DNA of 64,000 nucleotides from Salpingoeca rosetta. Taxonomy: Eukaryota; Protista; Choanoflagellata. The stretch lies in the NCBI GenBank assembly GCA_033442325.1, contig JAWQFM010000022.1:993926-1057925 (forward strand). The letters run 5' to 3'. Below are positions 18,749 through 26,424 of this stretch, one piece after another. Each line of letters begins with the position of its first letter. Positions within the stretch are counted from its first letter, which is position 1. The translations under genes were made by a program, and so were the position numbers. The notes beneath the pieces were generated by a model, which saw only the letters and a list, made by a program, of their open reading frames with translations, was not told the DNA's origin and searched no databases.

Positions 18749-19892
18749 CTTCATCACGTATCGGTCATGTCCACATCTTGACCGGAAACACTCTGTGTTT
18801 GGCCAAGTTGTTGGCGGATTTGATGTGCTTCTGGCGATGGAGAGAGCAAAGGTCGATGACGACAACAGGCCAACAGAGGTTCGTGTGCGTTTGTGTGCAT
18901 GTGTGTGTGTGCATGTGTGTGTGTTGTGTGTGTGTGCGTGTGGTTTTTGTGGCTGAAGGATTTCCTTCGTCTGTCCTGTGTTCGCGAGTACGGACTGCTT
19001 GCTGATGCCTCATCCCTTCCCCACGCACGCGCGTCACTCCCTCTGCACTGTTGCCTGCTCCGCGCCACCAGGAGATTAAGATCTTTGACGTGAAGGTCTT
19101 CAAGGATCCGTTCCAGGACCTCGACACCCAGAAGCAGCAGGTCGGTGCAGCGAGCTGTTGTGTGTGAGAGTTAGAGAGAGAGAGTGTGTGTGTGTGTGTG
19201 AGAGAGAGTGTGTGTATGAGTGTGTGTGAGTTTGTGGTGTTTGTGTTATGTGTGTGAGAGAAACACACAGAGAGAGACACAGAAAACGAGAGAGTGTGTG
19301 TATGTGTGTGTGCGCGTGGGCACACAGCAGTTCGCCAGCTGTATTTCGCATGTTCCTCATGTACTCAATTGTATGTGAACAGGAGGCTGCAGCAAAGGCA
19401 GATGAGAAGAAAAAGGAAGAGAAGAAGAAGAAGGAAACGGCTGCTCCAAAGGTGCGCGTGCATGCGTGTGCGTGCGTCAGCATCTCTGCCTGTGACGTGT
19501 GCCATGTTCGCTGAGGTGTGCTCTAGCCACTCTCACGCCCTCCTTCACCTCCTCCTTTCCCTCCTCTGTTAGAAATACCGATCTGGCGTGGGAAAATACA
19601 TTGCACCGTCCGGCAAACGTGAGTGTGCACCTGCCGTAATGGGACGCACCCCTGTCAGAAAGGAACGTGATGTGGCAGGGAGGAAGGGAGGGAGGGAGGC
19701 GTATTAGAGCCACTTTGTGTGCCCTCACTCTTGTCCTGTGGCTTGTGTGTGTGTATGTGTGTGCTCACAGGAGGCGCATCATCATCATCATCGTCATCGT
19801 CATCGTCGTCAACACTGCTGTCCTCGTCCTCTGTTCCATCCTCAAAGAAGTCAAAGCCATCTGGCGGCTTTGGCAACTTTAGCTCGTGGTAA
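15402..19892 (+). CDS. PPIL2: U-box cyclophilin PPIL2 (Cyp60); about 14 exons
   Basis: MGKNQHSKDRLFITASEW; LPFDCCCLSLQP; YHCPVTFKVFN; TLQDP; cyclophilin motifs FHRNIRNFMIQ|GGDPTGTG, SMANKGPNTNGSQ|FFITY and LDRKHSVFG; GVGKYI; C-terminal FGNFSSW*. Confidence 0.95.
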
Positions 19893-20116
19893 ATGTGTGT
19901 GTGTGTGTGTGTGCTTGATGCGTTGTGGGTGGATGTGTGAATGGTGCGTGGATATGTGTGTGTGTGCGTGGATGTGTGGGTGTTTGATGCGTTGTGGATG
20001 TGGTTGTGAACGTGGTTGGCGCGTTTCGCGTTTTGTGTCCGACCACGCCCCCAAAATGGCATAAACCACAAGAAGCAAAAAGCAATAAGCACAACACAAA
20101 AGCACCTGCGATCGCA

Positions 20117-22435
20117 ATGTCACTGTTGTGTCCGTGCGCCAAGTCAGGTGCAGATGACTATGAGGAGAGCGTGGGTGGCCGTGGAGATGTTGGAGGGCCG
20201 TACGCTGCGTCCACCAACACTGGCACCGCTGACACCGCCGTGAACAAGGCTCGAGAAAGGGAGGCGATTGTCGTTCAGCAACCGAGAAGGCAGAGCGCCA
20301 GCGAGGACAAGGACAAAGACGACACGGAAAGGGAAGAAGGTGCCAGCCCTGAGAACCGTGGGAGTGCAACGGCACCCTCCCCCTCACCACCATCGGCCGT
20401 TGGAGACGACACTCAAAAGAACACTGAAGCCGACACTACAAAGGACCCTCCCGCGAAGGACACTGCAGAGGCAGATGACACCACAAAGGACACCGTCACC
20501 AGCGCCGGCATCGACGAGGAGACTGCCAAGGCACTGCGGTCCATGGTGTCCACGTTTGCATCGCCAAGTGCCGTAGGCATGGACCCTCCGCCTACGCCTC
20601 CCGCTTCCCTGCGTCAAACGCTCACTCTCCTCAAGGACAGGACGGCCACCTTTGACAAGGCAAGCGAGGCATGCTCTAAGTTCATCTTCCAGCAATTCCT
20701 CTGGAATGATGACGACGTGGAGACTGAGTACGGCGCAACCTACGTCGACGATGACCTACTTGGTGGCGAGCACGTTGTCGTTGTTGACGAGGAGGGCAAC
20801 GTCGCCTTGCGCTGCTTCCACGTTGAGCCACGAGACAAGGACGTGCTTGTCGTCAGTTATCAGTGGAGCGCCATCGCTGGCACGGAGTTTGAATGGCCGG
20901 GCGGCGAGGCCAAGTGCACCACATGCCGCTTCGCTGGCGGCAACCGCAAGCGGGGAGGTCTCAACCCAGCCATCCTGGGCCCGGGCACGTATTGGGTGGA
21001 CCACTTGTGCTGTGAGCCCATGCCGAAGGGGCTCTGGTCCATCTACAAGAGCTTCTACCTCTACAACACCAACGAGCGCCTTATCGTTGCCACAGCATCT
21101 GCGCTTGCACACAACAGCATCCACCTGTGCAACCTCATTGCCGCGTTGGACCAGGAACAGCTCCAGAGTGCACCTGGCACGGACACTGTCCGCAGCATCA
21201 CGGAGAAGCTCCGGACGGCTGCGGAGCACGAGAGCCGTGGCTGGCTTGTGTGGGAGGAGGCCGCTGCTTCTGCCAGCCACGTCCTCATTATCAACGACGC
21301 TCATGCGGGCGATCCGGGTGACAAGAGTGACGGCGGCCACCTGGCGGTGCTGTACACTGACAGGGCCCACGCGAGCGACAAGGTGGTTGTGCGGCCCATG
21401 AACATGCTCGATGCTGTTCGCCCTCTGATTGGAACGAGCGCGGAGGCCAAGCTCGCAAAGGTGTTGGCCGCGTCCCTGCTGCTGGCAAGTACAGCTCCCG
21501 CGTCTTCTTCTTCGTCTGCGTCTTCGGGCGACAAGGGCATCAGTGCTGCTCCTTCGGCCGAGAAACGAAACGGCATTCCGCGGCCAGTGCTGCTCGCCTT
21601 GACCAACATCGTGCAGGGCATCGTTCGTGCAGGGCGCATGTTCGATGTGTACGACATCTGCAGGGCCAGCTCCATCTTTGGGCTGCAGCAAGACGTCATT
21701 GTTGCCCTCCTGGACAACACGCCCACACACGACTACCTGGATGGCAACCAGCGCACGGCCTTTCCCATCAGCGAGCACAGCTGGATGCCCCCGCTCACGA
21801 TTGTCGCCGGAACTGGAGACGAGGGCAACGGCGTGGAGGCGGACGTGCCTTGCGTAGCAATCGAATTCCCTGGTGTCCCGCCCATCCACTGGCCGCTGCT
21901 GAAGCTGTTGCACGTGATGGACGGTGGCCAGAGCCTCTACACGGCTGCGTCCATTCGCGGGCTCCTCTGCGCCCACAAGACGGACGTGCCAGCCCTCGGC
22001 TGCAAACCATTCGTCGAAGCCGTTGGCGTTGCACCAGATGGCATGCTGCTCCACCTTGTCTTCTTCGTCGACGTCACAGGCGGCGCGCACATGCTGCTGC
22101 CCGTCAAGTTGGTGTGGGAGCTGGAGGCACTGGACACTGACGGGTATGGGACGTGCCTCACTGTGTGCACAGAGCAGTGGGAGCCGGTGCGTCACGCGAT
22201 ATTCCCGCCAATGCCTAATATGGCCGGACTGTGCGGGGTGCTAGCTGGACAGGCGGTGCCTACAGACCGCGAGGCGTACGTGCTCGACTACGTTGACAGG
22301 TCGTGGCGCAGGGACGAGAAGGAACGAAACCCTTCCAGTCCCATGGTCCGAGAGCAGTGGCCAATTGCGCACAAGTGGTGTCTTGACCGCAACATGCCCG
22401 ACGAATTCCATACACAAACGCCCATGGTGGCGTAA
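20117..22435 (+). CDS. Intronless 772-aa protein with a heterokaryon-incompatibility (HET, PF06985-like) domain
   Basis: Single uninterrupted ORF with no microsatellites. Motifs occur in HET order: VVSYQW (~20849-20866), YWVDHLCC (~20990), SFYLY, SRGWLVWEE (~21233-21259), then RASS..QDVIVALL and HSWMP. Confidence 0.65.
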   Translation: MSLLCPCAKSGADDYEESVGGRGDVGGPYAASTNTGTADTAVNKAREREAIVVQQPRRQSASEDKDKDDTEREEGASPENRGSATAPSPSPPSAVGDDTQKNTEADTTKDPPAKDTAEADDTTKDTVTSAGIDEETAKALRSMVSTFASPSAVGMDPPPTPPASLRQTLTLLKDRTATFDKASEACSKFIFQQFLWNDDDVETEYGATYVDDDLLGGEHVVVVDEEGNVALRCFHVEPRDKDVLVVSYQWSAIAGTEFEWPGGEAKCTTCRFAGGNRKRGGLNPAILGPGTYWVDHLCCEPMPKGLWSIYKSFYLYNTNERLIVATASALAHNSIHLCNLIAALDQEQLQSAPGTDTVRSITEKLRTAAEHESRGWLVWEEAAASASHVLIINDAHAGDPGDKSDGGHLAVLYTDRAHASDKVVVRPMNMLDAVRPLIGTSAEAKLAKVLAASLLLASTAPASSSSSASSGDKGISAAPSAEKRNGIPRPVLLALTNIVQGIVRAGRMFDVYDICRASSIFGLQQDVIVALLDNTPTHDYLDGNQRTAFPISEHSWMPPLTIVAGTGDEGNGVEADVPCVAIEFPGVPPIHWPLLKLLHVMDGGQSLYTAASIRGLLCAHKTDVPALGCKPFVEAVGVAPDGMLLHLVFFVDVTGGAHMLLPVKLVWELEALDTDGYGTCLTVCTEQWEPVRHAIFPPMPNMAGLCGVLAGQAVPTDREAYVLDYVDRSWRRDEKERNPSSPMVREQWPIAHKWCLDRNMPDEFHTQTPMVA

Positions 22436-22457: not shown

Positions 22458-22503
<46 letters not shown>

Positions 22504-22848
22504 CGTGTGCATGTGTTGATGTGTGTGTGAATATGTGGAAGTGCGCACTTCTTTTCTTGCGATGACCAATTATCTTTCCTAACTTGCTAGATACCTCGTG
22601 CTTCTTCCTTATTCATCTGTCACTCCTTCATGACTTACGTACTCTTCAGTCCACTCCACCAACACATGGAGGAGAAATCGCATGTCACACACCCACAACA
22701 ACATACAAACAAGAACACCAAGAACATTAAAAAACTTCCCATGCAACACACAATACGACGCACGTGAAGCCACTGTGATGACTGTAATGTAACACATGAA
22801 ACAACGCCTGCAGCCGCCATCACCCCTGCGTTGTCCGCCTCACTCTGT

Positions 22849-26424
<3,576 letters not shown>

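Follow-up and report, generated by a model that had tools for sequence, protein, structure and literature searches.

In fungi, HET domains belong to the commonest modules of cell death and allorecognition, and the fungal domain is sufficient for cell death, while its biochemical mechanism is unknown (PMC10890737, PMC10197012). Homologs outside fungi were described from stramenopiles, haptophytes, green algae, bryophytes and choanoflagellates, the list including one Salpingoeca rosetta entry, gi|514691135, with a Pfam HET annotation (Dyrka et al., 2014; PMC4986451). Here we analyzed a stretch of 64,000 nucleotides from the S. rosetta genome (assembly GCA_033442325.1, contig JAWQFM010000022.1, positions 993,926 to 1,057,925 of the forward strand; hereafter the window) and in particular one open reading frame (ORF) at window positions 20117-22435, whose product we call P0001. 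A first-pass annotation, made from the letters alone, had taken this ORF for an intronless HET-domain gene. We conclude that it is probably an intact, resident, single-exon and single-copy choanoflagellate gene, whose product is a strongly diverged protein of the HET superfamily.

Organization of the Gene Product and Its Relatives

The open frame extends from 19994 to 22435 on the forward strand, with its first ATG at 20117 and the stop codon at 22433-22435, and the product comprises 772 amino acids. From the N to the C terminus, P0001 would consist of a Cys-Pro-Cys motif, an acidic disordered linker of about 120 residues, a helical pre-domain, a HET-like core, a HET tail with the PSW motif and a small alpha+beta domain. 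The parts are listed by window position:

20117..22435, forward strand: complete single-exon coding sequence of P0001, 772 codons plus stop; aligns end to end with the relatives P0002, P0003 and P0004, ratio of nonsynonymous to synonymous substitution rates (dN/dS) 0.27
20117..20143, forward strand: M-S-L-L-C-P-C-A-K with Cys5 and Cys7, a candidate S-acylation site; Cys-Pro-Cys-x-Lys-x-Gly-Ala is kept in the 69% identical ortholog and absent from P0003, P0004 and P0006
20144..20497, forward strand: acidic low-complexity linker, probably disordered, residues 10-127; poorly conserved, 16-residue insertion or deletion relative to the ortholog, dN/dS 0.41
20498..20755, forward strand: mostly helical conserved pre-domain, residues 128-213; conserved in P0002, helices in both AlphaFold2 (AF2) models at low predicted local distance difference test (pLDDT) values
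20756..21316, forward strand: HET-like alpha/beta core, residues 214-400; based on hhalign, MAFFT columns, AF2 pLDDT of 63-87 (residues 214-334) and the lowest dN/dS (0.125)
21482..21571, forward strand: Ser/Ala-rich low-complexity insert, residues 456-485; length and sequence vary among relatives
21572..21901, forward strand: HET-type tail, residues 486-595, with Y512 and H-S555-W556-M-P-P, the counterpart of the PSW.P motif; based on a second hhalign segment, columns of at least 90% conservation and language-model neighbors
21902..22201, forward strand: C-terminal alpha+beta domain, residues ~596-695, predicted as one helix lying on an antiparallel sheet of four strands, which is long and curved; AF2 pLDDT 78-87, conserved in P0003 and P0004
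22202..22432, forward strand: helical C-terminal tail ending in T-P-M-V-A, residues 696-772; W-x-x-x-H-x-W and the terminal motif are kept in P0002 to P0004, low pLDDT

The gene is present as a single copy in the 55.4-Mb genome. Its ortholog P0002, encoded on Logan contig L002, shares 69% identity with P0001, and the comparison of both genes gave a dN/dS of 0.27 overall at a dS of about 0.9, with 0.125 for residues 214-400, 0.28 for the C-terminal third and 0.41 for the acidic linker. The gene is real, intact and under purifying selection. The similarity to P0002 starts exactly at M-x-x-C-P-C while the DNA upstream of the ATG is dissimilar and does not align; consequently, we take the ATG at 20117 as the real start. 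On L002, a TG-rich stretch directly follows the stop codon (2488-2500) and the contig ends there, which mirrors a (TG)n array of the window. Short-read assemblies are probably interrupted by such TG arrays on either side of the gene. Retention of the PPIL2-type upstream neighbor of P0001 on L002 was considered as well and rejected, as nothing aligned in BLASTP and the two stretches of DNA aligned only weakly.

Beyond the ortholog, the family is small. An exhaustive HMMER search among 1.84 billion representatives delivered only four further relatives, namely P0003 (4e-45), P0004 (4e-35), P0005 (2e-32), which is a fragment of 150 amino acids, and P0006 (1e-10). They derive from JGI metagenome contigs and, in the case of P0006, from a EukProt transcriptome. 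Homolog searches based on a word index found nothing beyond P0001 itself and the 69% identical ortholog.

Probable Remote Homology to HET Domains

The relationship to HET domains emerges when profiles are compared with profiles. As a reference, a degenerate DNA pattern for W-I-D-A-L-C-I-N-Q was used to collect 120 metagenome loci, and 36 of their open frames, all long and diverse, make up the alignment A4; all ten members that were tested score 88-119 bits on PF06985. Comparing the family profile (A3) with A4 by hhalign resulted in a single alignment of 143 columns, which covers the whole Pfam span and holds all four blocks in register (score 29.5, P = 0.0069): VSYxW pairs with ALSYxWG, YW[IV]DHxC with WIDALCI, IY and its strand with IY..A..V, and RGWlVWEe with R.WiiQE. 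The reversed HET profile, in contrast, scored 12.8 and 75 column-shuffles 12.5 ± 2.1 with a maximum of 20. If only the cores were compared, the score was 29 (P = 6.3e-4), against 11.4 for the reversed profile and 11.7 ± 2.3 (maximum 22.8) for 99 shuffles. A second, collinear segment pairs HSWMPP with PSWvP. By the same measure, the accepted link between HET and TIR domains (P = 0.0015) is no stronger than the one between this family and HET.

A blind MAFFT alignment of 42 sequences placed S247, Y248, W250, N276, W293, V294, D295, L297, C298, Y316, R374, W376, E380, Y512, S555 and W556 in conserved HET columns, those of Y512 and S555-W556-M-P being conserved to at least 90%. The spacing of 46 residues from block 1 to block 2 is the same in the family and in HET, and all near-invariant HET residues are kept in P0001. 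Furthermore, the language-model neighbors of P0001 are HET clusters (0.96, 177 shared features, 61 of 100 hits), and those of P0006, which is only 24% identical, are HET clusters as well (0.96, 69 of 100 hits), while according to the tool about one in 100 shuffled proteins reaches 0.95.

Within the core, the conserved elements follow each other as a hairpin with C233, block 1 (V-S247-Y-Q-W250), a hairpin with C267-x-x-C270, N276, block 2 (Y-W293-V-D295-H296-L-C298-C), block 3 (I-Y...Y316...R-L-I-V) and block 4 (R374-G-W376-L-V-W-E380-E). Block 1, [AV]-L-S-Y-x-W-G in HET domains, reads V-V-S247-Y248-Q-W250-S in P0001; its S, Y and W never vary within the family and occur in 36/36, 32/36 and 35/36 of the HET references. 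In block 2 (W-I-D-x-L-C-I-N/D-Q in HET) all five full-length members keep W293-V-D295-H-L297-C298, while C-E-P stands in place of I-N-Q and an invariant His in place of Ala. Block 4 (R-x-W-x-x-Q-E in HET) is represented by R374-G-W376-L-V-W-E380, whose R, W and E are kept in four of the five members and whose Q has become W379. All six HET motifs quoted in the first-pass annotation are indeed present, and five of them are kept in distant relatives and lie in conserved HET columns; the sixth, RASS..QDVIVALL, has to be given up as a family feature, since D526 varies between D, E, I, R and S. Likewise, the HET motif ATDPRDK..Y..LGL is not conserved within the family. Invariant in the family are, in addition, C233, C267-x-x-C270, H296 and C298 (plus C299), which point to a putative metal site of Cys and His residues near the hairpin that separates strands one and two.

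From the alignment of the six family sequences, AF2 produced a poor model (pLDDT 44), and a fold search with that model was meaningless (template modeling score, TM, of at most 0.25). After HET rows were added, the core (residues 214-334) reached a pLDDT of 63-87 and showed the hairpin and the order beta-alpha-beta-alpha-beta, while the C-terminal domain (residues ~604-694) reached 78-87. This domain gave weak NTF2-, cystatin- and VirB8-like matches with Z of at most 6.5, where the noise level of the tool is 7-8, with Foldseek E-values of at least 0.03 and TM of at most 0.2. The region had been proposed to be an uncharacterized C-terminal sensor. However, when residues 486-772 were taken alone, their language-model neighbors comprised hypothetical proteins of fungi, clusters of DUF8212 (17 hits at 0.91) and, as a weak match, Het-6_barrel (0.79), so that much of the supposed sensor is an ordinary HET tail. 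Thus residues 486-595 drop out of that proposal as the usual tail, whereas the following alpha+beta domain of about 100 residues has no clear fold match.

Several results weigh against homology to HET or against a working effector. PF06985, with its gathering threshold of 22.5 bits, gave no match for P0001 even at E ≤ 10, and P0002 to P0006 had none at E ≤ 1; HET, TIR, DUF8212 and Het-6_barrel all remained unmatched when Pfam was applied to P0001 and its relatives. With a plain HMMER model of the 36 verified HET sequences, the family reaches about 2 bits and does not differ from reversed or shuffled decoys, and the relationship is therefore visible only at profile-profile depth. Even there, the HH-suite probability is as low as 5.6% for the full profiles and 28% for the cores. 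In P0003, block 4 has lost its R, W and E and reads L-G-K...W-D-E, so that this motif is not universally kept. The signals from hhalign and from the language model are not fully independent, because both partly read the same motifs, and the AF2 model of the core is no independent evidence either, because the HET rows of its alignment bias it toward the HET fold. Fold searches with this second model found no HET or TIR fold, although the matches fell mostly on the C-terminal domain and the core was thus barely tested. To this comes the near absence of transcripts, which is discussed below.

Other searches for canonical relatives were negative as well. Sequence searches of the PDB with the single sequence and the family profile returned nothing meaningful. 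Six-frame searches of the genome with PF06985 and with our own HET profile did not find a canonical HET domain, but such searches are weak for genes split by introns and the absence of canonical HET from the genome is thus not established.

One might argue that P0001 is a lineage-restricted protein of unrelated fold, whose short motifs resemble those of HET by chance or by convergence. This would be in line with the failure of Pfam and of HMMER, with the low hhalign probabilities, with the missing structural confirmation and with the tiny size of the family, which amounts to five clusters in 1.84 billion representatives. However, about 16 HET-invariant positions occur in the same order and at the same spacing over about 310 residues, the hhalign score lies 7-8 standard deviations over the shuffles and above 99 of 99, and two members of 24% identity each obtain HET neighbors at a score that shuffled proteins rarely reach. 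We thus consider an unrelated fold unlikely. As judged from sequence, the P0001 family is very probably homologous to the HET superfamily. The original HET-domain claim consequently stands in the sense of remote homology, based on both hhalign comparisons, the invariant residues and the language-model neighbors, whereas P0001 is not a member at the level of Pfam.

Relation to TIR Domains

The first-pass annotation had called the domain TIR-like. Remote homology of HET and TIR is a published link (PMC4986451), and it was reproduced here for HET, as the HET profile aligned with the TIRs of the genome over 68 columns (P = 0.0015-0.003). The P0001 family in contrast aligned with TIRs over 10-11 columns of the first strand only (P = 0.02-0.055). 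Because this alignment is confined to the first strand while that with HET comprises 143 columns, the family falls on the HET side. The label TIR-like rests on the published link, and the similarity of the P0001 family to TIRs extends no further than the first strand block.

Nevertheless, the genome contains at least 48 TIR_2 matches, of which 29 exceed the Pfam cut-off, and P0001 might be a canonical TIR-domain NADase from this large repertoire rather than HET-like. Some of these matches start with VSYSWG...CWIDI, similar to blocks 1 and 2, and the first strand of the family core aligns with TIRs at P = 0.02. However, the P0001 ORF is not among the TIR_2 matches, hmmscan of P0001 matched no Pfam TIR family (PF13676/PF01582), and the few aligned columns compare with 143 for HET. 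In addition, the spacing of about 58 residues between the third strand and R-x-W...E as well as the PSW tail are HET features. A canonical TIR protein is thus extremely unlikely.

Two observations on the TIR repertoire itself should be mentioned. A TIR_2 subgroup starting with VSYSWG...CWIDI.N is visibly intermediate between TIR and HET in blocks 1 and 2. Besides, many of the TIR_2 matches, whose loci include L133, L135 and L138, are found in long open frames, and one TIR_2 match is located at C22:1080642-1080917, about 23 kb past the end of the window.

Gene Locus and Neighborhood

The structure of the locus was described correctly from the beginning: the ORF is uninterrupted, starts 224 bp past a PPIL2-type gene and is free of repeats, as borne out by the frame itself, by Pfam matches of the upstream exons and by Tandem Repeats Finder. 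Within the ORF, the latter reported only two trivial matches (score of at most 38), while dinucleotide arrays are abundant in the flanks. The exon pieces of the upstream gene match zf-NOSIP/U-box and cyclophilin, with (CA)n-rich introns in between, and RNA sequencing (RNA-seq) confirms its correct splicing. Its product ends with ...GFGNFSSW* at 19892, exactly 224 bp from the ATG at 20117. The immediate surroundings comprise the following features:

19771..20100, forward strand: last exon of the PPIL2-type neighbor (stop codon 19890-19892) and its 3' untranslated region (3'UTR), which approaches the ATG to within a few tens of bases; based on sequence, spliced RNA-seq ends and Pfam on upstream exons
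19894..19983, no strand: (TG)n-rich array on the 5' side of the gene (Tandem Repeats Finder)
22459..22529, no strand: (TG)n array, 24 bp past the stop codon (Tandem Repeats Finder)
22849..23304, reverse strand: last exon of a convergent neighbor resembling purple acid phosphatase (Pfam Metallophos_C, 29.8 bits)

Origin of the Gene

The earlier interpretation had offered horizontal acquisition or retroposition as explanation for the intronless gene. In favor of a recent transfer, or of a retrocopy inserted behind PPIL2, the gene is intronless in an intron-rich neighborhood, sits tightly against the PPIL2 3'UTR and has a patchy distribution in eukaryotes. However, a genome-wide search found no intron-bearing parental paralog, and no poly(A) remnant follows the stop codon, the longest A-run in the 3' flank being six. 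The GC content at third codon positions (GC3) is 0.725, compared to 0.785 ± 0.08 in host TIR exons, and relative synonymous codon usage (RSCU) correlates with r = 0.81. Moreover, the existence of an ortholog at a dS of about 0.9 implies long residence, and no close fungal, bacterial or viral donor was found among the 1.84 billion representatives.

The homologs provide a further argument. P0004 is encoded on contig L003 (JGI 3300062210, Ga0606110_0048), which is 57.6 kb in length, has 35% GC and is eukaryotic. Near P0004, it carries a P-type ATPase and a lipase, each split by introns over several called genes, a Wntless-like transmembrane protein and a PCO_ADO dioxygenase. Despite these intron-split neighbors P0004 is one uninterrupted ORF, and P0003 is likewise a single ORF on its eukaryotic contig. 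Because both homologs are single-exon genes on intron-bearing, AT-rich eukaryotic contigs, intronlessness is a trait of the family. Taken together, codon usage is host-like and the gene, judged by these sequence features, is native rather than imported; recent horizontal acquisition or retroposition is very unlikely, while a transfer in the distant past may have taken place.

Expression

Transcription was assessed in three stranded RNA-seq runs, each of which was read to about a quarter and all of which belong to one study with one set of conditions. The RNA depth over the ORF was about 0-0.1, with no more than about two sense reads in any run, compared to 17-23 on the PPIL2 exon at 19572-19619, while reads of the DNA run X1 span the whole gene. 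In the sampled cultures the gene is nearly silent, which is unfavorable to the first-pass annotation, where a lack of expression had been named among the refuting outcomes. In run X20 only, a few antisense reads cover the 5' part of the ORF (20142-20626, depth 0.05-1.2), too few to be interpreted.

The 3'UTR of PPIL2 runs to about 20045-20100, as the RNA depth is 6-24 up to about 20044 and then falls to 0.4-4.4 at 20045-20141; zero depth at 19671-19923 is an artifact, because read mapping skipped the repeats there. Consequently, the 224-bp spacer (19893-20116) is largely occupied by the PPIL2 3'UTR and offers hardly any space for a separate promoter, which may be related to the silence of the gene.

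Both the scarcity of reads and the lack of obvious space for its own promoter would fit a silenced gene that decays to a pseudogene and has no current function. However, the frame of 772 codons is intact, dN/dS relative to the ortholog is 0.125-0.28 over the folded parts, and P0006 is a transcriptome sequence. Furthermore, a single condition from one study was sampled, and immune or death effectors are often silent until they are induced. Decay into a pseudogene is therefore very improbable.

Other Features of the Window

From 55130 to 59347, the forward strand contains an unbroken frame of 1405 codons without a Pfam match, which crosses a (CA)n tract and then codes for low-complexity protein rich in Gln and His. 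The frame probably represents one very long exon, and the statement that all other genes of the window are intron-rich thus requires qualification. An ORF on the reverse strand at 62867-63946 encodes a DDE_3 transposase domain (50.8 bits), and an exon-sized ORF at 46378-48084, also on the reverse strand, matches the oligosaccharyltransferase STT3 (24.6 bits). A forward-strand ORF at 51287-52657 shows a weak TFIIA match of 20.4 bits, which is below the cut-off. Finally, a run of N at about 23700-23800, seen as X in the translations, is an assembly gap beside an (AG)72 array at 23556-23699.

Proposed Function and Significance

By analogy with fungal HET domains, P0001 is probably a latent effector, and a role in cell death is plausible. 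Its HET-like core would combine R374-x-W376-x-x-x-E380 with the family-specific set of C267-x-x-C270 and H296. One might speculate that the conserved R/W/E residues form the working site, which would possibly act on a nucleotide such as nicotinamide adenine dinucleotide (NAD+) in the fashion of TIR domains, while the additional Cys and His residues may hold a putative structural zinc. The protein could possibly be tethered to a membrane by putative acylation of Cys5 and Cys7, and the gene would be kept off until a cue such as infection, fusion or mating type appears.

A more far-reaching interpretation would place P0001 in a HET lineage that predates fungi and is as old as the opisthokonts, and would see in it a suicide or allorecognition effector, tethered to the membrane by acylation of two Cys residues and stabilized by a Cys/His metal site, which is silent until needed and consumes NAD+ or another nucleotide. 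As a whole this scenario is rather improbable. If it were true, however, the gene would provide the simplest available system for HET biochemistry, in a genetically tractable species and among close relatives of animals. Choanoflagellates are the closest living relatives of animals. A HET-like gene that is single-copy, single-exon and strongly constrained, in a choanoflagellate that can be transformed, would offer a clean system for testing R/W/E catalysis. The same gene could serve to test whether HET domains cleave NAD+ like TIR domains do and whether such effectors predate the split of fungi and animals.

Comparison with Known Systems

P0001 shares the order and spacing of its blocks with fungal HET proteins (PF06985), such as HET-E/D/R and BH of Podospora and TOL, PIN-C and HET-6 of Neurospora. 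Common elements are the I.C hairpin, [AV]-L/V-S-Y-x-W, the N, W-I/V-D-x-L-C, I-Y...Y, a hydrophobic strand, R-x-W-x-x-x-E, a conserved Tyr and P/H-S-W-x-P. Like the fungal 'HET-only' proteins, P0001 has a long tail after the domain. DUF8212 (PF26640) and Het-6_barrel (PF26639) are tails of fungal HET proteins, and according to the language model the tail of P0001 is near the former and weakly near the latter, while neither is matched by Pfam. In other aspects P0001 differs from fungal HETs. It falls below all sequence-HMM thresholds, WIDALCINQ is changed to Y-W-V-D-H-L-C-C-E-P and Q-E to W-E, and the hairpin before helix A carries an invariant C-x-x-C, which is accompanied by the invariant His296. 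The N-terminal Cys-Pro-Cys, the acidic linker and the helical pre-domain set it apart as well.

With TIR domains (TIR_2, PF13676), P0001 has the S-Y-x-W block of the first strand in common, and a W-x-D second strand is visible by eye. The Glu-bearing block, however, is located about 58 residues past the third strand in P0001, whereas it directly follows the third strand in TIR. NADase activity is established for many TIRs, but for no HET.

A further comparison concerns the S. rosetta entry of Dyrka et al. (2014), which is a HET-related choanoflagellate sequence like P0001, but visible to Pfam whereas P0001 is not. Because the Pfam model does not see it, P0001 is probably a different and more divergent gene than gi|514691135. 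As choanoflagellate HET homologs have been known since 2014, P0001 as a divergent variant is a modest extension and no surprise. Nevertheless, a deep branch of the superfamily escapes the Pfam model of HET, and surveys of HET outside fungi consequently undercount. Finally, while many fungi possess tens to more than 100 HET copies, P0001 is encoded by a single-copy gene of a choanoflagellate.

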